Part shown: piece by piece, positions 4,933 to 64,000 of the stretch
Layout: the number at the start of each line of letters is the position of its first letter
Numbering within the stretch: position 1 is the stretch's first letter
Assembly (NCBI GenBank): GCA_047495785.1
Contig: JBLDXI010000042.1
Location: forward strand, 3,968,001-4,032,000
Direction of reading: 5' to 3'
Source: Lepidodermella squamata
Lineage: Eukaryota; Animalia; Gastrotricha
Length of the DNA stretch: 64,000 bases
Notes under the pieces: model-generated
Seen by the model: the letters and a program-made list of their open reading frames with translations, nothing else
What the model was told of the DNA's origin: nothing
The model's database searches: none
Program-made: the position numbers and the translations under genes

Positions 4933-5548
4933 TTTATTCAGCTGGATTTTAAAGCAACTACTCAAATATCAAAATGACCGAATACTAAAAAAAAGTCTTG
5001 TAAACACGTGCTCGCATGCATCAGACGTTTTTTCGGCTTATCTCTGTCCTTTCAAACCACAGTTTTCTAATCAGACAAAAGCGACGTGAGCTCATTAAAG
5101 ACAACTGATTGTATTGCGGTACAATTTCCCCACAATTTTGTACATTAGCTTGCCTATTAAATTCGGGAAAAATGTCAGAAAAATCGCCGGTCTCATGTAA
5201 TACAAAAATATCGATATTATTGCTTCAATCATCTATCGGCGATTTTTCGGAAGGAGACGCTCCAAATTGAAGCTATGGAGCTGAATATTATGCCCAATAT
5301 CAGAAAAATAGGCAATTTGACTTGCTGTAAAATTACCATTTAATCACCTGTCATATTTACCTGTCAGGTTTATGCCAAACTAAAGATTTACAAATCAAGA
5401 CCTCAAAAACTCCAATATTCACATTTTATTTTCCATAGAAAATTAATAAGATAATTGAAATGTATCAATTTTAAATTGAGTTTACATAGGAAATTTAGAA
5501 TTTGAGAAATTCTCAGTAGCAGCAATACTGTGCGCAAACGGTCTAACA

Positions 5549-8500
5549 TTAATGGTAATGGAAAGCTTGACCGTTAGCAATGTCGGGGAAGCGAGGTGAG
5601 TGAGGCGGCGATGCCGAATTCGTTTCGACTACTGTTCGCCGGCGAAGATCTGGGCTGCTGCGGATGATGGCTTCACCTAATTGGCGAACCTCAGAGCCCT
5701 GCTGGTACCCGGTTACGACCTCGACCTGTCCGCCGTGATAACAGCCTTGATGGCACTGATGCATGACAGGCATCGATTGATGCAAGATTTGAGTTGGAGT
5801 TGAGTCGACGCAAACGTATTCCTTCTTTCGGATGGTTGGAGGTGATATCATGCAAGTTTGGCGAATTATCTGCGGCTCCGGCATCGGGCCGGGTGGGCCA
5901 GGAGGACCAGGAGGGCCAGGCCGACCAGCGGGACCAGGGGGGCCAGTGGGCCCTGAGACACCTGGAGGTCCCGGATTACCATCACGACCTTTCTCGCCCT
6001 GTGGCCCTCTCGTCCCGTCTTTCCCGTCTTTTCCGGCAGGTCCAGGCGGGCCGTCTGGCCCTCGGTCACCCCGATCACCTGGTGGACCTGGAGGTCCCAT
6101 CGGTCCGTCTCGGCCTTGCGGCCCAGGGGGGCCGGCTGGACCCCTTGGGCCTGGCGGTCCTTCGACGACTCTAACTGTGCCTTGTCCCATTGGTCCTGAG
6201 GGGCCTTGATCTCCCGGGTCCCCTTTTTCGCCCTTTTCGCCAGGAAGGCCTCGAGGACCCATGTCACCCTTGTCGCCTTTCGGCCCTGGCGGACCCGGAG
6301 GGCCAGGAGGCCCAGGTGGTCCTGGAACGCAGACATGTCTCGGCGGCTCAACGCATACTTTTCGGACTTGGGGCGGTGAAATAACGCAGCGGCGTACTAG
6401 CTGAGGTTCCGGAATTGGACCTGGAGGCCCCATTGGTCCATGTGGGCCCATTGGCCCAGGTGGGCCAGGTGGTCCTGCTGGTCCACGATCACCCATTGGT
6501 CCGCGATCTCCCGGTTTTCCTGCAGGACCCGGTATGCCGGGGACACCCGGTGGACCATTTTGACCATCCCGACCAGGCGGACCGGGAGGTCCCGCTGGGC
6601 CCGCAACACCAGGAGGCCCAGGAGGCCCTGGAGGTCCCGGAATTCCTTTCCCCGGGGAGCATGGTGGTCCAACGGGCCCCTGGGGACCAGTCGGCCCGGG
6701 CGGGCCCATCTTGCCATCTTTCCCATTCTGACCGGGGCACCCTGGCGGTCCCATGGGGCCAGGAAAACCTTGTGGTCCCGGATCCCCTTTGTCACCTTTA
6801 ACCCCTCGCTCGCCTTTGGGACCAGGTGGTCCAGGGTCACCTTTCGGTCCAGGGTCACCATCCTTGCCATCCTTACCATTTTTGCCCCTTTTACCTTTCC
6901 TGCCCTCTTTTCCACGACGGCCACGAGGACCTGGACGACCTGGCGGCCCTTCGATTACCTGAAACGGACCTGGACAACCTATGGGGCCCTGCGGACCAGG
7001 AGGGCCGATCGGACCGATGTCTCCACGCTCCCCCTTTTCTCCTTTCTTACCTTGAGGACCTTGAGGACCCGCGTCACCTTTGTCGCCTTTCGGCCCTGCC
7101 GTACCACCAGGTCCTGCTGGTCCAATCAAGCCTTGCTCGCCCTTTGGTCCCTGTGGCCCGTCATCCCCTTTGGGACCCATCGGACCCACTGGTCCTGCGA
7201 TTGGCTCAGGGATCCAAGCCAGTATTTGCTCTTTCGTAAAACATTTACAAGCTGGTCGAGCCATGCGTTTCGTAAATAACATGGCAAATAAAGCCGCGAA
7301 TAGAATCGCAATAATGGCCGCGACGACGCACGATATGACAATCATTTCGGCTAAGTTTAGGGATGATTGAGTGATGGGTGGTGGCTCAGACACTTGGGCT
7401 CCAGGCCCAGGTTGTGTTGTCGAAGGGGGTGGCGGTGGCGGTTGAGTAGGTGTTATAGTAGATGGCGAGGGATTTACAACTGTTGTCGGAGTTGGAATCT
7501 GATCGCAGACGAAGGCTTGTGACTTGCAGTCATGAGTGGACCATCTAAAAACAGAGCTTGATTATCAGTGTTCAAAATACTATAATAATCTCGTACACAT
7601 ATCCTAGGGACCGCGGGTCTTTAACCAACGACACGCAGTCTCCACAAGCTGTTCCACTTGTTGCAGCTAGTGGTGGAAATTCACGAGGTTGCACCACGCT
7701 GCCATCTTGCCAAGACATTCCAAAGTTTTTCGTGCCCAGCCAGTAGTAAGATGTGCCTGGTATTGCGCTCTTCAAAGCTGTCCTCGTTGCTTCGACATCC
7801 GCGACGCTTTTCAGCGAAGCCAATGAATTACTGCACCGCTTCTGAGCCTCATCGAAGTTCAAATTGTCTTCCTCGGTGAGAGTCACCCGGTTGTTAGATG
7901 CTTGGCAAAGAGCAAAGCTGACAGCCGAGCATGGCCTAGGAACCAAATCAACAACAGGATCGGCGTTAGCTCGCGAAATGACTCGCATTGATAAACACAT
8001 TGGACATGTCTTCGCATCGGCAGCTAGAGTCCAATTTTCGCAAGCTGCATACGACGCAGCAGCTGTGGCGTAGATTGATGAGACTATCGAGTCCCTGCTA
8101 CTCGAGGACCTTGAAGCTAACTCAATTGCTGAGGAGCAGGTCATCCGCTTAGACCAATCGATTTCATCTGAGCAGTTGCATTTCGGCGTACCCTTGCTCT
8201 GGAACAGAAAACAAACAATATAATGATCATTTTAATATGCAATGGTTGACATACCAAGTCTGTTTCGAGGATATCGTAGAGCATTGCATATCTGTAGCCA
8301 GCTCGTGAGCAGTATGTCGTACACTCCACTCGAGTTTTATCATCATCCAACCTCCTGAATTGTTGAAATTGTGGGCGCCCCAAAATTGGGCCACTGCCTT
8401 CTTGGAAGAAGCAGCCCTGCCAATAGAGTGACGATCCATCGTCTAACCAGGCCCATGGCTGTGGGGTAACTCGTAGCCCAGTGTGAGCTTCATTAATATT

Positions 8501-8758
8501 GCCACGAATCAGGGCGGCTTCCACTATGGTTTGGTCATCAATCGATTCGATTTTCGCCAACTTCGGGCAGGTCTGGCTGATATCAGTGTAAGTTACCGGC
8601 TGAGGGTATGAGAGTACGTCGAAGCACTTTCCGCTTCCGGTTGTGGAGCATGATTTATAAACCGTAGGCTTGTTGTTGTCATTAGGGGCTTGTTGTGAGG
8701 AAATAAGAATACAGTTGACGAGGCATAAGATGCCGAGTGAGTATTTTAGTCTCGGCAT
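5549..8758 (-). CDS. Signal peptide + C-type lectin-like domain with inserted WSC domain + second CTLD + Pro/Thr stalk + TM helix + long Gly-X-Y collagen region. About 1033 aa; exons 8758-8255, 8198-7597, 7544-5549.
   Basis: ORFs 8141-8797, 7572-8144 and 5549-7393 join in frame through 56-nt and 52-nt GT-AG introns. The second junction restores the CTLD end ([16 protein letters not shown]). The TM is [24 protein letters not shown] (~7345-7274) and the GXY repeats span ~7195-5880. Confidence 0.85.
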
Positions 8759-9265
8759 GGCGCGCAATGCCTGAGAAAAAGGGGTCGTCAAAACCAACTG
8801 AATTCAGACTGCCAACGGTTGATAGGTACAGGTTCTATCTCTCGCTTGCAATTATTTAGTCATTGCGCGTTGCCAGGGTGCCATGGACGCGCGAAAGCTA
8901 AAACGCAAGCGAACTGAATGGCGAATCATCGATCATAAATACCAGCGGCGTAACCAAGACCACATCCTCCCATTGTTCGAGCCGCATTAATGATCACCCA
9001 TAGCGCTGCGAGGTGTCAACGCGCACCTAGTAGCAGGTAATGCGGACGACGGCAGTGCTAAAAAAAACGATCGAACAACTTCTGTTATCGAGCCATTCGT
9101 TGGTGCGAATATTCTAGAATAGCTAAGTTCAACTCGTGCCGCTATATCGACAGGCGAAATAACTGGTTATTGCAGTGGGCTAAAATAAAAAATTCGGGTA
9201 CGTAATAACACAAGAGTGTTAAAATATTCAGTCCTATAGGACTTGGATGAATGATTTGACTGACG

Positions 9266-11808
9266 ATGTCCTTGGTAAAAGTCAAAATGTTCATGTTCAG
9301 TGTTTTGATCGTAGCAAGGTTGGCATCGCTATCTAATGCTGCTTCTTATGAAATTCATAATCTAACAGCAGCTATTGACAGAAGCTATTGCTTGGATCCT
9401 GGCTGCATAGAGGCTGCAGCTTTGATTATTCGAACTGCTAACCTCTCGCTAGATCCCTGCGAAGACTTCTACGAATTCGCTTGCGGTAAGTTCATTACTG
9501 CAGCGACCAAGCAATTTGCGATTAAAAGGAAGTCGGTCATCAACATCTACGATAGCTATTGTAATCTAGTTGAAGACTCCATTCAAGAGGCACTGATTCT
9601 TGGGGATCGCCCGGGACAGCCGATCGAGGAGAGAAATGCTGCATTTTTCTACAAGGTTTGAAACACTCGATAAACAACAACCTTAGCAAGGAAAATTGCC
9701 TTTATTAGTCATGCGTTGATTTTAAGAGTTACGGAGACGATGGTGGAGTTCTTCAGGCGGTCGAAGTAAGGTTTCTACGTCAACTTGTGAGAAAAGTGGC
9801 GGGAGATTCTGATTCGGGAGATATCCCTTCGTTCTTTAATTCATCTTCTATCAGCAACGGAAATTTCAGCATTGAGGAGCTCTTGGTCCGGGGGTTACTT
9901 TATTCCCCGAACACAACAACCGCCTTCTTTCAAATGAGCATCGACCGAGATTTGTTGGATGCTTCCAAATTATCAATTTTCATCGCGCAAAGCCAGACAT
10001 TCTTCTTCCTTGACCAATCTCTTTTAGCTTATTTACGACAACAGCAAGAATTCAGCGGAGTTGATGCCCTTGAAGAAGAGCTAATACCTAGATATGAAGC
10101 CTTCCTGAGGAATTTCTCCTTACTTGTTGATCCTTCTATGAACGGAAGGGCAAATGAGACAGTGTTGATCCGAAGGATGATTGACTTTGAGAAAGGCCTC
10201 GCTATGTTGACTCCAGCTATAGCTGATATCCCAGCTCATGTTTTTGGACCTGATGATGAAGGTAATTTAACTTTCCATGAGCTACAAAAGCTGTCACCTG
10301 CAGTCAATTGGATAAAACTACTGCGAGCTATAGGAATTCAATACAATGTCTCTACTCTATTGACATCGGATTGGGAGAGGATTTCGTTTAATGTCTATTC
10401 GAAGTCTTACTTCCGAGATTTATCTTCATATTTGAAAGTATGGATGAATTCTACGGATGGGCAACTTGTCCTGAGGAATTACGTTATATTGCAAAGTTTG
10501 CTCAGTTACTTACCGGAGTTTCGATCATCAGTTCTGACAGATCTTATCAATGCGTTGACATCTACACAGAGTCGTGAATCAACTTCGTCTGAAATCCAAT
10601 GTTTGAAACTAGCAAAACGTTATTATGGCAAGTCTATGTCACGCCGTTTTATCGCTAACTACTTCCCATTACAATCGAAGGAAAGATTGGAAAGGATCTC
10701 TGAGCAAATCAGGACGACTTTCGCACAAAAGTTGCGCGCGAAAAATTACGGTTGGCTTGACAGCCAATCGAGAAATAAGGTGTTGTTGAAAATTGGCAAA
10801 ATTTCTTATTCGATTGGATACCCGGACGATCTCCTCGAAGACAGGAACTTTGGATTGGTTTCGCCAGCATTTTCCGACTACTTCGAGAATATCCAGAAAC
10901 TTAGGAATGGTCTGAATTCAGTTGCGTTCAAACTTTTGGACAAACCCCCCGAGCGAGAAAACGAGTAGGTGATTTGTTAGCTTAGAATCCTTGAATGAAC
11001 TTGCGCATTTTTAGTTGGGGATCACTGTTGCCGATAGATAACAATGCGGCCTATGACCCCCTTAATAATGCTGTGCATATAGCTGCAGCTATCTTGGTCG
11101 AGCCTTTCTTCCGACCGGACTTCCCATCATCATGGAACTGGGGTATAGGACAAACCATCGGTCATGAAACGCTTCACTCTCTAGACCAACTCGGCGGCAA
11201 ATATGACGAACTCGGCCGAAGGATGGATCTGATGAGGAATGAAAGTTTCTGGCTGTTTACGAATGAGACTCAAGCTATCTTCAAGAACTTGACTCAATGC
11301 ATGATTGACCAGTACTCAGCGACGGATTTTCAAGTTCTGCCAGGCTACACAACGGATGGTCAAGCGACTTTCAACGAAAATCTTGCTGATAATGGAGGTC
11401 TGAATTTGGCATTTGAGGTAAGAATTTGAAACGGGAGTCTTCCATTTGTTCACACTTTTTCAGGCCTTCAAAAGCGAAGCCAACGATACGTTTGATCAAT
11501 TAGAATTAGCTGTGAAACATCCATCTCTGAACAACGGCAAGGGTTTGTCAAAGAGCCAAGTTTTCTTTCTAGCAGTTGGTATTGGTTACTGCGAAGCTCG
11601 AACGCCGACCAGTTTGAAAAAGCAGTTGGACACTGATATTCACGCACCAAATAAACAGCGAGTTAACGTGATGATGGCAAATTCTGAAGTTTGTTTCAAC
11701 GTTTTATTGTTCATCTCTCTAAATTAGCTATTTCAGGATTTTGCACATGCTTTTCGATGCTCGAAAGGTTCCAGAATGAACCCTGTGAAAAATTGTCGAG
11801 TTTGGTGA
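9266..11808 (+). CDS. M13 family zinc metallopeptidase (neprilysin/ECE-like), probably secreted; 5 exons
   Basis: Motifs are DPCEDFYEFACG, IGYPD, NAAY, zinc motif GHETLHSLD, ENLADNGG, HAP and the C-terminus MNPVKNCRVW*. An N-terminal signal-like peptide is present. Confidence 0.92.
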
Positions 11809-16923: not shown

Positions 16924-18646
16924 TCAAAACATAGGCTCGTCGGCACTTGTGGTGAAACAGGTCCATTTGGCCTCAACGGGAGCAGCAGGTTGAAAGAGTC
17001 CGTCGTCTTCGCTATTAACGAACACCTTGTTGCACGATGAAATGAGCCAGATTTGCTTCTTTGGCTCTGAAGCCGAGGATGTCGATCGACTGCCACGATT
17101 TACCAGCCAACGGTCGTAATCATTTACAGGCGGGAAGACAATGTTGTCCTTTTCGGTGATTTTCGCCTCAGGTTCCGGTTCCGGTTCATTTTTCGTAGTC
17201 GAGCTCGACTTTAGCCAGTAGTCGAAGTCAAGAGGGCGAGAAAACTCGGCGAATTCCGGTTGTTTCGGGGGCTGTAGCAATTGCGCTGAACAATTTGGCT
17301 CGCAAACACATTCCGACATGGTACAACAAGGGTCAGAAGCTCGGCAGATCACTTTTAACCAGGAGGAGTTGTTTGATCGAATCGTTCGAACAGAAGCTTG
17401 CGTTCGGGGGGTCGACGAATAACTGCTTGCAGGAGACATAGGTCGATTTTCGGTTATCATGGAAGCTGAACAAATTGCTAGCTCTTCAATATCAGGCACC
17501 AAATCGCAGGATCGCACGCTGCTAGAACGTTCGAACCGAGAAGCAGCCATGATAAAATCGGATGAGTCACTTTCACTAGTTCGCGGCGATGAGCGCTTCG
17601 GTTTAGCCAGCCAGTAATTGGCATCGCTACTCAACGCGGAGAAGAAGTTGAATACGTGCGATTCGTTTGAATTCGGCATTTCACCAGGGTTTAATTTAGC
17701 GCCATTGCCGCCGTAAAATTCGGCTTGATCAGCTGTGCTCGTGGCAGTGGAGGAAACCAGCCACTTCGTAAGCAGCTCATTGCTTGAATCTTGATCGCTC
17801 TCAATCACGTGATACTCCTCCTCTTTGTAGTGGGTATTACTCCCCTTTTTAAACAGCCACTTATCAGTATCAACTACCAGCGGTTTGTTCGGCTCAGATG
17901 TTTCCATTGATTGCGCTACTTTGCTGTCAATCGAACGTAGCGCTGATGGCAAACCGGCGACAAACACAGAACAATTTGTGGCGTCGGCAGAGCACAGCGA
18001 TCCCATAGCAAGTCCTAGAACGAATTCAGCATCGCTGTTTCGCATGATTGCTGGGATAGATACAGCGGCGATCGCAAATATTTTGCCCGACGTGGGCGCT
18101 ACAACTGACAGCGCTGAAGTTAAAGTTTTCACGTGTATCGGATCAACAGTCAACAGCATACGGCGCTGCTTTGCATTCAGGCATGTGGTAACGACTTGGT
18201 CGATAGCCTCGGGTGAAGATAACTTCCCGCTTGATCGCAAGTCAATAGTGTGAATCGGGTCGGAGCAATAACGCTGAATGATTAGGCTAGGTAGATTGGA
18301 TTGGAACCCAGCAAGCCCATCTTCAACATATTCGTCGAAGCCGTAGCTATTGTCAATGATGCTGTCGAGTCGAACAACCACCAGCTCGTTAGAATTGATC
18401 ATGTTTGGAAGGTAAAAGGTAAACAATCCTAATCTAGCGTATAATTACCACCTAAGCAACAATAAAAAATAAAAAATAAATAACAGCTTCCAAGCTGAAT
18501 GAATTAAAGTACTACCCGAAACTAATGTCATCCTCAAATGATGCCAGGGGTAGGAGTTTTTCAATTTTATGACTTTCTTTCTCCGTGGGCCTGTAAACTT
18601 TCGTTGCTGAGTCGTGAGTCGAGCATTCGAAAACAATAAATTCCAT
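16924..18646 (-). CDS. NCOA4: NCOA4-like protein (ferritinophagy receptor family); 5' exon structure uncertain
   Basis: The 500-aa ORF 16924-18426 carries CRASDPCCTMSECVCEPNC, matching the NCOA4 motif CRANEPCTSFAECVCDENC, and repeated xWL motifs (DKWL, TKWL, NYWL, SSWL, DYWL, DRWL, QIWL). A possible upstream exon is 18646-18516. Confidence 0.65.
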
Positions 18647-19552: not shown

Positions 19553-21541
19553 ATGCCCAGTGTTTGTAAGCACTGCGGTTCTTCTGAGCTCGACAAAGAT
19601 CCTGCTAGATGCGATGTAGTATGTACTCGTTGTGGTGCTGTTCTTGAGGAAGGAGCTATCGTGTCGGAAGTGCAATTTGAGGAGGGAGATGGAGCCGGTC
19701 GTGTTATCGGTCAATTTGTTTCATCGGATGGTACAAATTCAACTCATCTTCAGGGCTTTGGTGGTATGTATTTCGGCGAGTCGCGAACGGCAACTCTTCA
19801 AAACGGAAAGCGCCACATCGAAGAGCTGGCTTCACGCCTCCATTTGAGCAATCACTTTGTCGAAATTGCCTACAATTTCTACAAGTTGGCCGTTGTAAGA
19901 CGTTTAACGCGCGGTCATCGTCTAACTCATATCGTGGCAGCTTGCCTTTACTTGGCCTGTCGTTTAGAGAGTACTCAGCACATGCTACTTGACTTCAGTG
20001 ATGCATTGCAGGCAGACGTGTATGCTTTGGGTCACGCTTATCTTTACCTCACAAACCGTCTCGCCATCAATCCACCTGCAATGGATCCATGCATTTATGT
20101 CTCCCGTTTTGCGCATCGCCTGGAACTCGGCGATAAGACTCATGAAGTGTCTTTGACCGCACTTCGTTTAGTTTCTAGAATGAAAAAGGACTGGATGCAT
20201 ACTGGCCGACGGCCTTCTGGCTTATGTGGCGCTGCGCTATTAATAGCAGCCCGCATTCACGGCTTCAATCGTGGCGTTGAAGACGTTATTCGCGTAGTGA
20301 AAGTTTGCCAACAAACTGTGATGAAGCGATTGCTGGAATTCGCTAACACGGAATCTTCCAATCTTACTGTCGAAGAATTCAATCGCGTCGATTTAGAGCA
20401 AGAAGAAGATCCGCCAGCCTATGCAAAAAGTAAAGCGGAAGCTGAGCAACCTCCTCCGCCACCTAGTCTTGTAGACCTCGCCAAATATGAAGCAGACTTG
20501 GTCGCTGTCCATCGTGAAATCGAAAGAGTCCTTAGCGAGACCGAAGTGAAGCGACGTCGATTTATGTACCGGAAATTTGGCCTGAAAGAGGAAACTGACT
20601 TCGAAAAAGTAATCGACGAGTGCGGTCAGGTGCTTGAATCCGGCGCTTCAACTTCGAAAGATGACGAGGAAATTGATTTGGACGAAACAGTTGCAATGCT
20701 AGAGAACGATATTGATGAAATAATGAAACAAGAAGGCGGTGCTTACAAGCTCAGGCCAACTCTGCAATCCCTCGGCTTAGCTCCGGATGAGACGGCTAAG
20801 GAAAAAGAGGATCAATCAAAATCTGCTGAAAATGTGCCGTCAACCAGTGCTGAGAAATCGGTTAAAAAGGCCGAGGAAAGCGAAGATGAAGAAAAAGAAG
20901 CATTGCCCGAAAATTGCGAATTAGATACTGCGGATTTAGACGACGGCGAGCTGGACGGTTATTTGTTAAAACCTGCTGAAGTTAAAGTTCGTACAATTTT
21001 GTGGACGAAATTGAATTCGGAATATTTGAAAGAACTGGCAGAGAAGGTGGCGAAGCAACGCGAGGAAGAAGCGGAACGGGCGAAAAATCCGCAAGAACAC
21101 GATGCAAAAGCAAAAGCTGCGGCGAAAAAGCGCCGGTCGCGTAAAATTCAACCGCAAGCAACGCCTGGTCAAGCTATTGAAGTTCTAGTTCAACGTAAAA
21201 AACTCAGTTCGAAAATCGATTACGAAAAACTGAAGAGTTTAATGCCGGGTGGGTCTAATCTCGTCACGCCTTCGACCCCGATCGCAGCTTCTGAAGAAAC
21301 TAGCCGAAAGCGGGCTGGAATTTCATCTCCTGAGCTAACTCCAGCTGAAAAATCGGCCCGCTTAGTGGCGAATTCAGTGCTTGCCTCGCGATTCGGTGCT
21401 CAAAGTGACGAAGAAGATGAGGAAGAGCTGGACGAAGATGACGAGGAGGGACCGGATCGAAACGCTGGGTTGAGTGCTCGTGATATGTTGGCTCAATTCA
21501 GCGGCGGTTCGTACGCGGCCGGGGACGACTACGACTCCTGA
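19553..21541 (+). CDS. BRF1: Transcription factor IIIB 90 kDa subunit; single coding exon
   Basis: TFIIB zinc ribbon (CKHC...CTRC), two cyclin-fold repeats (DPCIYVSRFA, GRRPSGLCGAAL), EQEEDPPAY, and the BRF1 C-terminal blocks (LDDGELDGYLL, KKLSSKIDYEKL). Confidence 0.97.
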   Translation: MPSVCKHCGSSELDKDPARCDVVCTRCGAVLEEGAIVSEVQFEEGDGAGRVIGQFVSSDGTNSTHLQGFGGMYFGESRTATLQNGKRHIEELASRLHLSNHFVEIAYNFYKLAVVRRLTRGHRLTHIVAACLYLACRLESTQHMLLDFSDALQADVYALGHAYLYLTNRLAINPPAMDPCIYVSRFAHRLELGDKTHEVSLTALRLVSRMKKDWMHTGRRPSGLCGAALLIAARIHGFNRGVEDVIRVVKVCQQTVMKRLLEFANTESSNLTVEEFNRVDLEQEEDPPAYAKSKAEAEQPPPPPSLVDLAKYEADLVAVHREIERVLSETEVKRRRFMYRKFGLKEETDFEKVIDECGQVLESGASTSKDDEEIDLDETVAMLENDIDEIMKQEGGAYKLRPTLQSLGLAPDETAKEKEDQSKSAENVPSTSAEKSVKKAEESEDEEKEALPENCELDTADLDDGELDGYLLKPAEVKVRTILWTKLNSEYLKELAEKVAKQREEEAERAKNPQEHDAKAKAAAKKRRSRKIQPQATPGQAIEVLVQRKKLSSKIDYEKLKSLMPGGSNLVTPSTPIAASEETSRKRAGISSPELTPAEKSARLVANSVLASRFGAQSDEEDEEELDEDDEEGPDRNAGLSARDMLAQFSGGSYAAGDDYDS

Positions 21542-60550: not shown

Positions 60551-63500
60551 TCACATTTTGATTTCGGCCGCTATCAACAGGTGCAACATCGAAAAGGCGA
60601 CCAACGCCAAGTTGAGTACAGAAATTAGGAATGGCGAGTGACCTAGAAAAATTTAACAAAATTTCACTTTAAAATTAAAAAATTTGAAATATGACCTAGA
60701 TTAGGACACGCATTTTTTCAAATTTCATCTTTCAGCTTTCAGTAAAATTTGTCATGATTTCTCGTAAATTTAAAAAAACTTACGACTGGCCAAATTTGTT
60801 TTCTGCGCACTCGGTGCTTGCGTAGAATTATTAGCCGGGGTAGTAACAGCATCGAATGCTCGAACCGTTGTACTTAAATTGGAAGGCGCCACAGTGGTAC
60901 CGACTGAAACAAAAGAAATTAGCAATTATTATTACATTACGAAGCAATAGTGCCATGGCTACGCAAGTGTAAATGAAGGCAAGAAGCAAATGATAAGAAA
61001 TTATAACCAAAAACCGAGTGAGATTCATGCAGGGTGCATCCAGGTGTAAAAAAGCAAACATCAGAGGATTTTCATTATAGTGTCCTTTTTCAACCACCTG
61101 AGGTCGCTGTAGTCACAGAAGTGGTGGTGGTAGTTGCTATTCTACTCCATCCTGGCGGTATTTCACTGGTCCAAATCCAAACCAGCGGCTCTTTAGTAAT
61201 TCTTCGTGTAAGTGGTTGTATCGGTATTCTCGATGTAATAAACTGCTGCCAGAAAGACGTTGTACTCTGCTCCGATTGTTTCGGTGTTTGACGCGGTGTG
61301 GTTGTGAGAGAGTTCAAGTCAGACAAAAATGTGGAGAAAAGAAGGAGTTTGGAAGATACTGAGAGTGGAGAAAAGCTAGTGAGATTTTCAGACTCTGTTG
61401 TGATCACTGGGGGCACATTAGTAACCGTATCAGGGAAATTACTTGGTCGAGAACTCGAAGATGATGAAGAAGAAGAATTTATCGTTGTATTAGTGGAGCC
61501 AGTCGAGACGGTTGCCGTGACTGAAGATTGGCCACTTTGGGTGGAATTAGCCACGGCATCGATTGACGTCGAGCCTACTGACGTAGTAAAGCTTTCAAGT
61601 CGCTTTGTTGGAGATGCAGTAGTCGGAAGGTCGTCAGAGACTCCTTTGGTGCTGAAATTTCCTGAACGAGCCGAGGTTGGAATTGTCTCCAAGGAAATAC
61701 TCTCATTTTTCGTTACAATCGGAGCGCCACTACTTGTCTGTAGACCAGCGAGAGTCGATGTAACTGTTTCAACTGAACCTCCAACAGTGAGCATAGTTGT
61801 GTTGAGTTGAGACATTTGGGTTGAGGAAACTGCCATGGTTGCACTGGTTGGAATCGTGTCGCCTGTGACAGTATTCTGGCCAAGAAGAGTAGATGCTAGA
61901 CTTGTAGCTTTCCATTCTTTAGCGCTTGTAGTTGGAGCGCCAGATGTTGCATCAGGTTCACTTTTAATAGTTGTGGGGCTAGCAACAGTCGGTTCCGTAA
62001 CAAGTGACGACCCAACGGAACTAGGGGTTATCGCCGAAATCGAAGTAAGTATAGAAGATGATTCATTGCTCATCATTGCGGTAGAGCTGGTCCAGTTCAA
62101 AGATGAAGTAAAAACATCTGTTTTAGGATTGCTGGCAATCGTAGTGCTCTCAGCTTTGCTAGTTGTAGCTTCAGAAAGGACAATCGTACGAGGGGTTGAC
62201 TCGCTGAAGCTTGCAGATGCATTACTGACAGCTTCTGAAACAGGACTCTGATTTGTGAAGTAATCCGTCATAGGAACAGCCGTTGAGCTTGTAACAGTCG
62301 ACGGTGGAGCGGCATCGATGATAGTGGTCATTTCTTGCCTCGTAGTAGAACTTATCGTCGAGCTGGCAGTGATTTCCGCTATAGAGCTAGTAGTTGCTTT
62401 AGAATCAGTTGCAGTCGTAGAAACAAGGTCCGATGGCGGAAGGGAACCGCCAGTATAGGGATTCATTATCGGTGTCGCGGTATTAGATGAAGTCGAGGCA
62501 ATAGGTTCCACGGTAGTTGAAAGCAGCAGCCCCGCGGACTTATTCGAAGAAACCATCGACGAAGTAACTTCCGTCATTGCTGGAACTGTAGTTGTAGCAG
62601 AAGGCGAGGAGCCTTTGAAAGCGTCTTCCTCGATAACCTTCGCGCTTTTTGAAGCTGTGACTCCAGCCTCAGATTCCGAAGTCGTGCTGCCAACGACTGT
62701 GCTTGGCGCTGGTTTAGTTGACGATACCTCAGAAGGTATCGTACGCTCTGGAACAGAATAACTTGAGTTAGTCAGAATGACATTACTAAACAGGGTTGAA
62801 GTTAGCACACGATCCGTGGTTGCAGTGGTTGTGATGAAAGAATCAGTGATTGACAGTGAGGTAGTGTTATTTGAAATAATATTAGAAACAGTTGTTTCGG
62901 TGATTGGTGACTCAGCAGTCGTTTCTCTTGACGGAGCACTTGTTTCCGGTTGGGAACTAGAAAGGGTAGATGGTAACAAAGTTGTGATCACAAAACTGCT
63001 TGGTGAGCTGACATCGATTGGGCGGCCCGATGAGCTAATAATATCAGTGACATGAGCGATTTGTGAGGTAACAATAATATCCGTTGATATCTCAGATTGC
63101 GAGCCGTGCTGTGTTGAGCTTGAAAGTTGTACATTCGCCTGACCTATCTCAGACGGCCTGGTTTCTGTAGTTTCATCCGCTGCAGGAGAAGTATGTGAGA
63201 CATTTGATCTCGAAGCAGGCCATCTACCTGTGGTACTTGTATCTTCAGCTGCGGTAATATTCATTGAATCTTCCACAGTGGTCAAATCACCGATGCTTCG
63301 CTGACTCGTAACGCCTAGTACAGATGGCGCAATAGTGATATCAACTTCTGTTGCGTTCAGAATTCTTCCTTTAATTGTCGACAGAATCCTAGATGAAGGT
63401 TTTGTAGTTAGGTCAGACGACGAAACAAGCACAGCTTTTGTGGTCAAAATATTAGCATTGTCAATCAGCGTAGTTTCGGTTGCGTTTATAGCTTCCTTAT

Positions 63501-64000
63501 CAGTAGTAGATGCTTCTCTTCCATAAGACATTACAGTTGTAAGTATTAGATAGTCAGCTGTTGTAATTCCGAGCGAATAGTCAGTTGTCCTGGAATCCAG
63601 GTTCGTTGCAGTTTCGGAAGCGTGCTTTGTAGTGAAGCCCGCAGTTTGGTCGTCCAAACGCTTTGCGGTCATGTTACTTCTTCCAGCAATCTCTGTCGAT
63701 GTCATTTCAGACATTTTCTCGCCAGAAACATCAACAGCTGATCCTGACGTCGATGATACATACAGCTCTGAGGGTTTAGTTATAGCTGAAACTTCCTTCC
63801 CGCCCTGGCGGCTGGTCGACTGAGCTTCTGCTGTTTCGTTCTGCCTGTTAGTTGAAGCTTCACCTGGAATAGCAGTGGATCTCTGAGTACCGATCTCAAG
63901 CGTTTCGTTCGATACATTCAAATCACTGGTGAAATTTTCCCGAAACGTAAATTTGTCGGTGACCTGAATTTCAGGCGCATTGGATGGTTCTGTTTCAATC
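60551..64000 (-). CDS. Large mucin-like Ser/Thr-rich protein with a C-terminal hydrophobic anchor; 5' end lies beyond the window
   Basis: The frame is open from the window end to ~61097 (>960 aa, S/T-rich, many NxS/T sites). It splices to ~60903-60784 and ~60641-60551, ending PFLISVLNLALVAFSMLHLLIAAEIKM*. Confidence 0.8.

Follow-up and report, generated by a model that had tools for sequence, protein, structure and literature searches.

A lectin-like gene of the gastrotrich Lepidodermella squamata with a transmembrane helix and a collagen region predicted to face the cytosol

To our knowledge, all animal collagens fold in the secretory pathway, with its prolyl hydroxylation, disulfide knots and chaperones, and all membrane collagens and collagenous lectins known to us are type II proteins that hold the helix outside the cell. 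The sole precedent we know of for a collagen repeat that faces inward from a membrane is provided by the STP oncoproteins of herpesvirus saimiri, in which a membrane-anchored, cytoplasm-facing Gly-X-Y oligomerization module is reportedly required for signaling. Here we describe a gene on the minus strand of a 64,000-nucleotide stretch of the genome of the gastrotrich Lepidodermella squamata (GenBank assembly GCA_047495785.1, contig JBLDXI010000042.1, positions 3,968,001 to 4,032,000; the whole stretch is called the window, and positions are counted from its first letter). The product, which we call lectin-collagen, combines a signal peptide, lectin-like domains, a single transmembrane (TM) helix and a long collagen region. 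Its predicted layout, with lectin-type domains outside and about 400 collagen residues inside, would be the reverse of every membrane collagen that is known to us or that we found described.

The closest described systems each share a part of this design. Collagens XIII, XXIII and XXV and C. elegans COL-99 (the MACIT group) have in common with lectin-collagen a single TM helix, a CxC-type cysteine pair within a few dozen residues and interrupted collagen blocks. MACITs, however, have the type II orientation, in which a short N terminus lies in the cytosol, and possess a collagen ectodomain and a furin site, whereas lectin-collagen has a signal peptide and two C-type lectin-like domains (CTLDs) ahead of the helix and carries its positive charges on the collagen side. 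We therefore rejected MACIT membership, as the flanks of the helix (net charges of -2 and +4) do not have the type II orientation and BLAST aligns the protein to a collagen XXV chain through Gly-X-Y only. Collectins, CL-P1/COLEC12, SR-A/MARCO and the choanoflagellate protein ChCL share with it a collagen trimerization rod and lectin-type recognition domains on each chain, with the avidity of a trimer. In these collagenous lectins and scavenger receptors the collagen is N-terminal to the lectin and on the same extracellular side, the membrane-bound ones being type II, whereas the order here is CTLD, TM helix, collagen; ChCL, too, keeps its collagen outside (bioRxiv 10.1101/2021.10.08.463732). 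Membership among the collectins, CL-P1 or the class A scavenger receptors was rejected on this order and because Lectin_C occurs in none of the best 120 of the thousands of generic collagens matched by whole exon 3. The STP proteins differ again: they are viral and tail-anchored, with about 18 triplets and no ectodomain, and they have no sequence relationship to lectin-collagen.

Rebuilt from the sequence, the gene consists of three exons and two GT-AG introns (Table 1) and encodes exactly 1,033 residues without an internal stop. This agrees with the original prediction, made from the letters and a list of open reading frames, that three frames join into one of about 1,033 residues, and the features it listed (signal peptide, Cys-rich lectin region, Pro/Thr stalk, TM helix, Gly-X-Y repeats and SP-rich tail) are all present, with the TM helix counted here as 25 residues. 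The GT at 7596 is the sole donor for intron 2 that restores both the frame and the motif that ends a CTLD, W-x4-C-x6-C (WSTHDC...FVC); the GT at 7580 was rejected as the exon 2 donor, since reading through it meets a stop codon. The link from the second CTLD (CTLD2) to the collagen is firm, because the codons of C375 and C382, both among the first 13 of exon 3, share one stop-free frame (7544-5549) with the stalk, the TM helix, the collagen region and the tail, just as had been proposed. Nor is this junction a chimera of the assembly, as a unitig from a public DNA sequencing run spans 7029-8329 and takes in exon 2 and intron 2, together with the stalk, the TM helix and the first part of the collagen.

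That single run, in which introns are retained, also contains two haplotypes, each at about half depth, as noted at 5338-5603 and 6003-6598. Within 5570-6674 they differ by 21 single-base changes, 19 of them at third codon positions and all those 19 synonymous, where random changes would be expected to be synonymous in 27% of cases (p ~2e-9). In the collagen region 17 of the 19 substitutions are synonymous, and so are three differences in the tail. All four insertions or deletions in the coding sequence (18, 18, 6 and 3 nt) are multiples of three, while past the stop codon, in the 3' untranslated region, there are indels of 7 and 1 nt and the divergence is about 4.6%. The synonymous excess and the in-frame indels thus argue that the frame is translated and under purifying selection, tail included, and, judged from its sequence, the locus is a genuine, selectively maintained and lineage-restricted gene. 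The collagen of the second haplotype is shorter by two stretches of 18 nt, or six residues each, near 6438 and 6519, so that the helix is polymorphic in length between haplotypes, in whole Gly-X-Y pairs.

Topology was assessed from our own hydropathy and charge counts with simple rules. Exactly two hydrophobic segments occur in the 1,033 residues, aa 1-22 and aa 436-460, and the 15-residue flanks of the latter carry net charges of -2 on the N side and +4 on the C side. By these counts the protein has the marks of a type I single-pass protein, namely an N-terminal signal, one TM helix and a positive-inside flank. Because a signal peptide is followed by a single stop-transfer helix whose flanks differ in charge in this way, the collagen is predicted to lie C-terminal to the helix in the cytosol, and the earlier argument to this effect, from the signal peptide and the positive-inside rule, is sound. 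Met1 and its signal are probably the true N terminus, since a divergent M13-peptidase gene begins only about 500 bp upstream, leaving no room for extra upstream coding exons, and a strong acceptor stands 12 nt before the ATG. This acceptor-like site, TTTTTCTCAG, is a candidate for spliced-leader addition or for the end of an intron in the 5' untranslated region.

In the reading that we favor, the cleavable signal would send both disulfide-bonded CTLDs, the first with a nested, degenerate WSC domain, and the mucin-like stalk into the lumen of the endoplasmic reticulum and on to the cell surface, and transfer would be halted by the very hydrophobic helix (aa 436-460) with KRMAR behind it. The remaining 573 residues would then be cytosolic, comprising the CKC pair, two tandem modules with 131 triplets between them, and a tail rich in Cys/His and Ser-Pro. 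The imino-rich Gly-X-Y repeats may form a homotrimeric triple helix without hydroxyproline, about 110 nm long when fully extended, and such a rod would cluster three ectodomains while the tail would tie the receptor to partners in the cell cortex. Juxtamembrane cysteines are typical palmitoylation sites, Cys/His clusters can bind zinc, and cytosolic tails typically show such juxtamembrane cysteines as well as YxxPhi (here YVCV), RRxT (here RRRT) and Ser-Pro motifs. An extreme imino content would also be expected, because in the cytosol the stability of the helix could not rely on hydroxyproline. Expression of a full-length mRNA, topology, trimerization and any ligand are what we infer here.

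The collagen region comprises 131 Gly-X-Y triplets (393 residues), with glycine strictly at every third residue within runs of 16-32 triplets, and its blocks are separated, in order, by QVIE, CSPGK, a 30-residue Cys linker (NC-A) and TVRVVE. Pfam Collagen (PF01391) matches exon 3 in seven stretches (E 4.6e-60). Proline occupies 56% of X positions, 34% of Y positions and 45% of the two together, and there are 29 GPP triplets. Among the collagens sampled in the animal's own genome (121 Mb in 151 contigs) this imino content is by far the highest, the others having proline at 8-26% of X and 0-23% of Y positions. NC-A recurs at the start of the tail as NC-B (from nt 5881; 71% identity, E 1.7e-5), and the collagen part is therefore read as an internal tandem duplication. 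The tail itself contains RSSPDLRRR and SPPHSPR. A homotrimer prediction with three copies of aa 429-669 scored 0.09 against a mark of 0.32, and such a score counts neither way.

In the ectodomain, CTLD2 matches Pfam Lectin_C (PF00059) in exon 2 with 24.5 bits against a cut-off of 22.6 (exon residues 113-191); the match ends at profile position 85 of 107, and the first 13 codons of exon 3 supply the rest of the domain. All four canonical cysteines (C290, C356, C375 and C382) are present, as are a WIGL-type core motif in the form YWLGT (aa 320-324) and the end motif described above. At the positions of the sugar site, however, CTLD2 has QPR (aa 338-340) and WST (aa 370-372) in place of the EPN/QPD and WND of sugar-binding CTLDs, and the nearest solved structures, matched at only E ~0.03, are LOX-1 and NKG2D, both non-sugar-binding. 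The earlier description of the protein as a glycan sensor is weakened by these replacements and relatives: on its motifs the ectodomain is justly called lectin-like, and CTLD2 lacks the motif set for Ca2+-dependent sugar binding. Two N-glycosylation sequons are found, both in the ectodomain.

For the N-terminal part, the WSC match in exon 1 (PF01822) is weak (E 0.04, 14.6 bits against a cut-off of 27.8), and its position is that of the nested WSC in two distant own-genome paralogues, L006 and L007, where a good WSC (E 1e-14, 52-54 bits) lies between two CTLD halves. The 230 residues after the signal peptide align end to end with these paralogues, including the CTLD halves that flank the WSC and the final C..F.C motif, which argues that the ectodomain consists of two CTLDs, the first (aa 37-267) with a degenerate WSC nested inside it and the second, CTLD2, at aa 268-382. 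Of the order CTLD, WSC, CTLD given in the original prediction, the Cys-rich, lectin-type content stands, and the arrangement is more aptly described as one CTLD that carries the WSC in its loop, with a second CTLD after it. L006 and L007, secreted or multi-CTLD proteins, have a good WSC where the lectin-collagen gene has a degenerate one, and a TM helix followed by collagen was found at neither locus. These paralogues represent a family of CTLDs with a complete WSC in the long-loop region (L007, G000:C9:4934778-4938020; L006, G000:C42:4194679-4197933), and L006 runs on into further CTLDs; we know of no description of a CTLD with a WSC nested in its long loop.

Several observations weigh against a cytosolic collagen. 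Ten of the 12 cysteines after the TM helix are placed at or beside the ends of collagen blocks or in non-collagenous segments (two in the CKC pair, one in CSPGK, three in NC-A, two in NC-B and two in the Cys/His cluster of the tail), C559 and C638 being the two within Gly-X-Y, and both internal repeats keep the cysteines of the linker. By analogy, this placement is the interchain disulfide-knot pattern of secreted collagens, and such cysteines would be useless in the reducing cytosol unless metal-bound or acylated. Proline in 34% of Y positions, and the presence in the genome of several genes for prolyl 4-hydroxylase alpha, are consistent with a collagen that is luminal and hydroxylated. The succession of TM helix, CxC pair and collagen recalls types XIII and XXV, and collagen XXV is among the language-model neighbors of exon 3, which are collagen clusters only, at a score of 0.87 (below 0.9 and hence a lead only). 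Moreover, database searches found no orthologue that would show conservation of the layout, and collagen helices in the cytosol are not known to us from any cellular protein.

The cysteine pattern with its conserved linker, the Y-position proline with the hydroxylase genes and the collagen XXV neighbor would all be accommodated if the collagen were luminal or extracellular and the mature product, made from a different transcript, were something other than the full-length type I protein; we regard this as unlikely, and still as a serious contender. One route to it would be a separate mRNA, from an internal promoter or from a spliced leader added at the AG 5 nt before Met436, that encodes a 598-residue membrane collagen with its N terminus inside and its C terminus outside, like XIII and XXV. 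Met436, the first Met of exon 3, does coincide with the first residue of the TM helix, and CTTAG stands ahead of its codon. A product starting there, however, would have no N flank, a C flank of +4 and a 25-residue hydrophobic core, for which charge-difference and length rules favor N-out/C-in, so that the collagen would again be cytosolic; the same bias in flank charge disfavors the earlier scenario of a type II protein started at MIVISC. That scenario also envisaged a product like the nematode cuticle collagens, which share with lectin-collagen a hydrophobic segment, a basic RxxR-like motif and cysteine-flanked Gly-X-Y blocks. In lectin-collagen only two residues separate the basic motif (RMAR) from the membrane, which leaves too little room for cleavage of the furin type, and a charged N-terminal flank is lacking. 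Col_cuticle_N (PF01484) was absent from exon 3 and from a profile search of the genome, in which P4Ha_N, searched likewise, did match, and SL1 RNA was not found in the genome; we therefore rejected the cuticle-collagen reading. The other route to an extracellular collagen would be an in-frame splice from the donor GTAAAT at 7477 to an acceptor at 7205 (273 nt), which would remove the stalk and the TM helix and yield a secreted lectin-collagen. Of 91 GT..AG pairs around the TM helix, this is the only one in frame with a passable donor, and none combines a good donor with a T-rich acceptor. The candidate acceptors are without the T-run of the gene's three good acceptors, and 273 nt is five times the length of the real introns. 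Against either route, folding of CTLD2 requires the beginning of exon 3, after which no stop codon intervenes, and non-collagenous homology to collagen XXV was not found.

A different possibility accepts the type I topology, on the same evidence, and denies the helix: the cytosolic Gly-X-Y region would be a proline-rich, partly disordered tail for partners of the SH3, WW, EVH1 or profilin type, or for phase separation under the membrane. The cytosol is without hydroxylation and collagen chaperones, which suits this explanation, and the homotrimer score lies below its mark, though as said it counts neither way. A proline-rich linker, however, would not need glycine to recur strictly in every triplet through runs of 16-32, the two 18-nt deletions keep the triplet register, and the collagen substitutions between haplotypes are overwhelmingly synonymous (17/19). 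Bacterial and viral collagen-like proteins form triple helices without hydroxyproline, and on balance we hold a non-helical tail to be improbable. Still more so, and indeed very improbable in our estimate, is the idea of a recent gene fusion without function, or of an open frame that is not expressed and plays no biological part. The single copy, with no orthologue or paralogue found, would suit it, whereas 19 synonymous differences out of 21 against 27% by chance, coding-sequence indels that stay in frame next to a 3' untranslated region with frame-breaking ones and about 4.6% divergence, and intact splice sites, start context, stop codon and AATAAA all speak for a maintained gene. A cytosolic, triple-helical and probably trimeric collagen rod on a type I receptor is thus our tentative preference, to which we would give slightly short of an even chance. 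The further-reaching claim, that lectin-collagen would be the first membrane protein encoded by a cellular genome to carry a collagen triple helix on its cytoplasmic face, in the form of an unhydroxylated trimeric rod some 110 nm long that reaches from a lectin-type receptor into the cortex, is one that we put forward as doubtful.

The searches for relatives bear on how restricted this layout is. Against 1.84 billion cluster representatives, exon 2 gave five weak CTLD matches only, four of them ordinary multi-CTLD proteins, and residues 1-125 of exon 3 (the end of the CTLD, the stalk, the TM helix and the juxtamembrane segment) gave none. In the animal's own genome a second copy of the TM region, the tail or the Cys linker was not found, the linker matching only the gene's internal repeat, and the nearest collagen paralogues match through Gly-X-Y alone. 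A language-model neighbor search found none with the tail, and cytoplasmic collagen domains were not found described in the literature. By these measures the gene is single-copy, and no orthologue or paralogue with the succession CTLD, TM helix, collagen was found among the cluster representatives or in the own genome. The original prediction that no described protein has this architecture is borne out to the same extent: the layout was absent from the database, own-genome and literature searches.

Elsewhere in the window, an intronless gene encodes BRF1, the 90-kDa subunit of TFIIIB (662 residues). Its identity is 40-46% over most of its length, alike to molluscs, ticks, Priapulus, an annelid and fishes, and since its best matches are spread so evenly across phyla, the protein collection appears to hold no close sequenced relative of this animal. 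Two further open frames, of 500 and 943 residues, have no Pfam match at E 1e-5. The divergent neighbor of the lectin-collagen gene is a neprilysin-like M13 peptidase (Peptidase_M13_N, E 6e-30) with an N-terminal hydrophobic segment of its own, and the gap of about 500 bp between the two starts could be a bidirectional promoter region.

Other parts of the genome hold further collagen-related genes. Giant single-exon collagen frames, open for up to 4,503 residues, occur at G000:C31:1667000-1688000 (L014-L040) and at G000:C1:349000-364500. Proline takes up 0-2% of Y positions in the C31 set and about 20% in the C1 set, and the C31 giant collagens are presumably almost without hydroxyproline. Genes with a prolyl 4-hydroxylase alpha N-domain lie at G000:C32:3879020-3889558, C38:627700-663433 and C112:21317-21761; some of these alpha genes come in near-identical pairs across contigs, which could be haplotigs or recent duplicates.

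Table 1. Coordinates of the lectin-collagen gene, its parts and other genes in the window
Feature	Position (nt)	Strand	Residues (aa)	Remarks
Acceptor-like site, unpaired	8771..8780	-		TTTTTCTCAG; 12 nt upstream of ATG; resembles the gene's two internal acceptors
Exon 1	8758..8255	-		ATG at 8758; Met1, signal peptide, N-terminal half of CTLD1, start of nested WSC-like insert
Signal peptide	8758-8693	-	1-22	N-terminal hydrophobic segment
Intron 1	8254..8199	-		56 nt, GTATGT..CCAG, phase 0
Exon 2	8198..7597	-		Remainder of WSC-like insert, C-terminal half of CTLD1, most of CTLD2
CTLD1/CTLD2 border	7904-7902	-	266-267	CTLD1 ends with CQ; CTLD2 from aa 268
Intron 2	7596..7545	-		52 nt, GTACGA..TTTTTAG, phase 2
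Exon 3	7544..5549	-		Single open frame: CTLD2 end, stalk, TM helix, collagen, tail; TAA at 5551-5549
CTLD2 end	7505..7543	-	370-382	WSTHDC...FVC; canonical cysteines C375, C382
Pro/Thr/Ser-rich stalk	7346..7504	-	383-435	Second haplotype has 6 nt more, in frame, at 7498
TM helix	7271..7345	-	436-460	25 aa; Kyte-Doolittle 19-residue mean up to 3.11; opens with the first Met codon of exon 3
Juxtamembrane segment	7196..7270	-	461-485	KRMAR stop-transfer charges, C468-K-C470, short amphipathic stretch
Collagen region	5882..7195	-	486-923	Five Gly-X-Y blocks of 26/32/26/16/31 triplets
Linker NC-A	6323..6412	-	747-776	Non-collagenous, three cysteines
C-terminal tail	5552..5881	-	924-1033	110 aa: NC-B, HQCHQGCYH Cys/His cluster, YVCV, RRRT, Ser-Pro motifs
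Polyadenylation-signal-like hexamer	5425..5430	-		AATAAA, about 120 nt beyond the stop codon
M13 peptidase gene	9266-10968	+		Neprilysin-like
Open frame	16924-18426	-		500 aa
BRF1 gene	19553-21541	+		662 aa, intronless
Open frame	61090-63921	-		943 aa

Our findings would be unusual under either placement of the collagen. If it is extracellular instead, a lectin and a membrane collagen would be two products held in one continuous open frame. If it is cytosolic, the gene would show that hydroxyproline is dispensable for building and using a triple helix in an animal, and collagen would gain an intracellular structural or signaling role in an animal. Lectin-collagen would then also provide a natural, very proline-rich and hydroxylation-independent collagen sequence that may be of interest for biomaterials.

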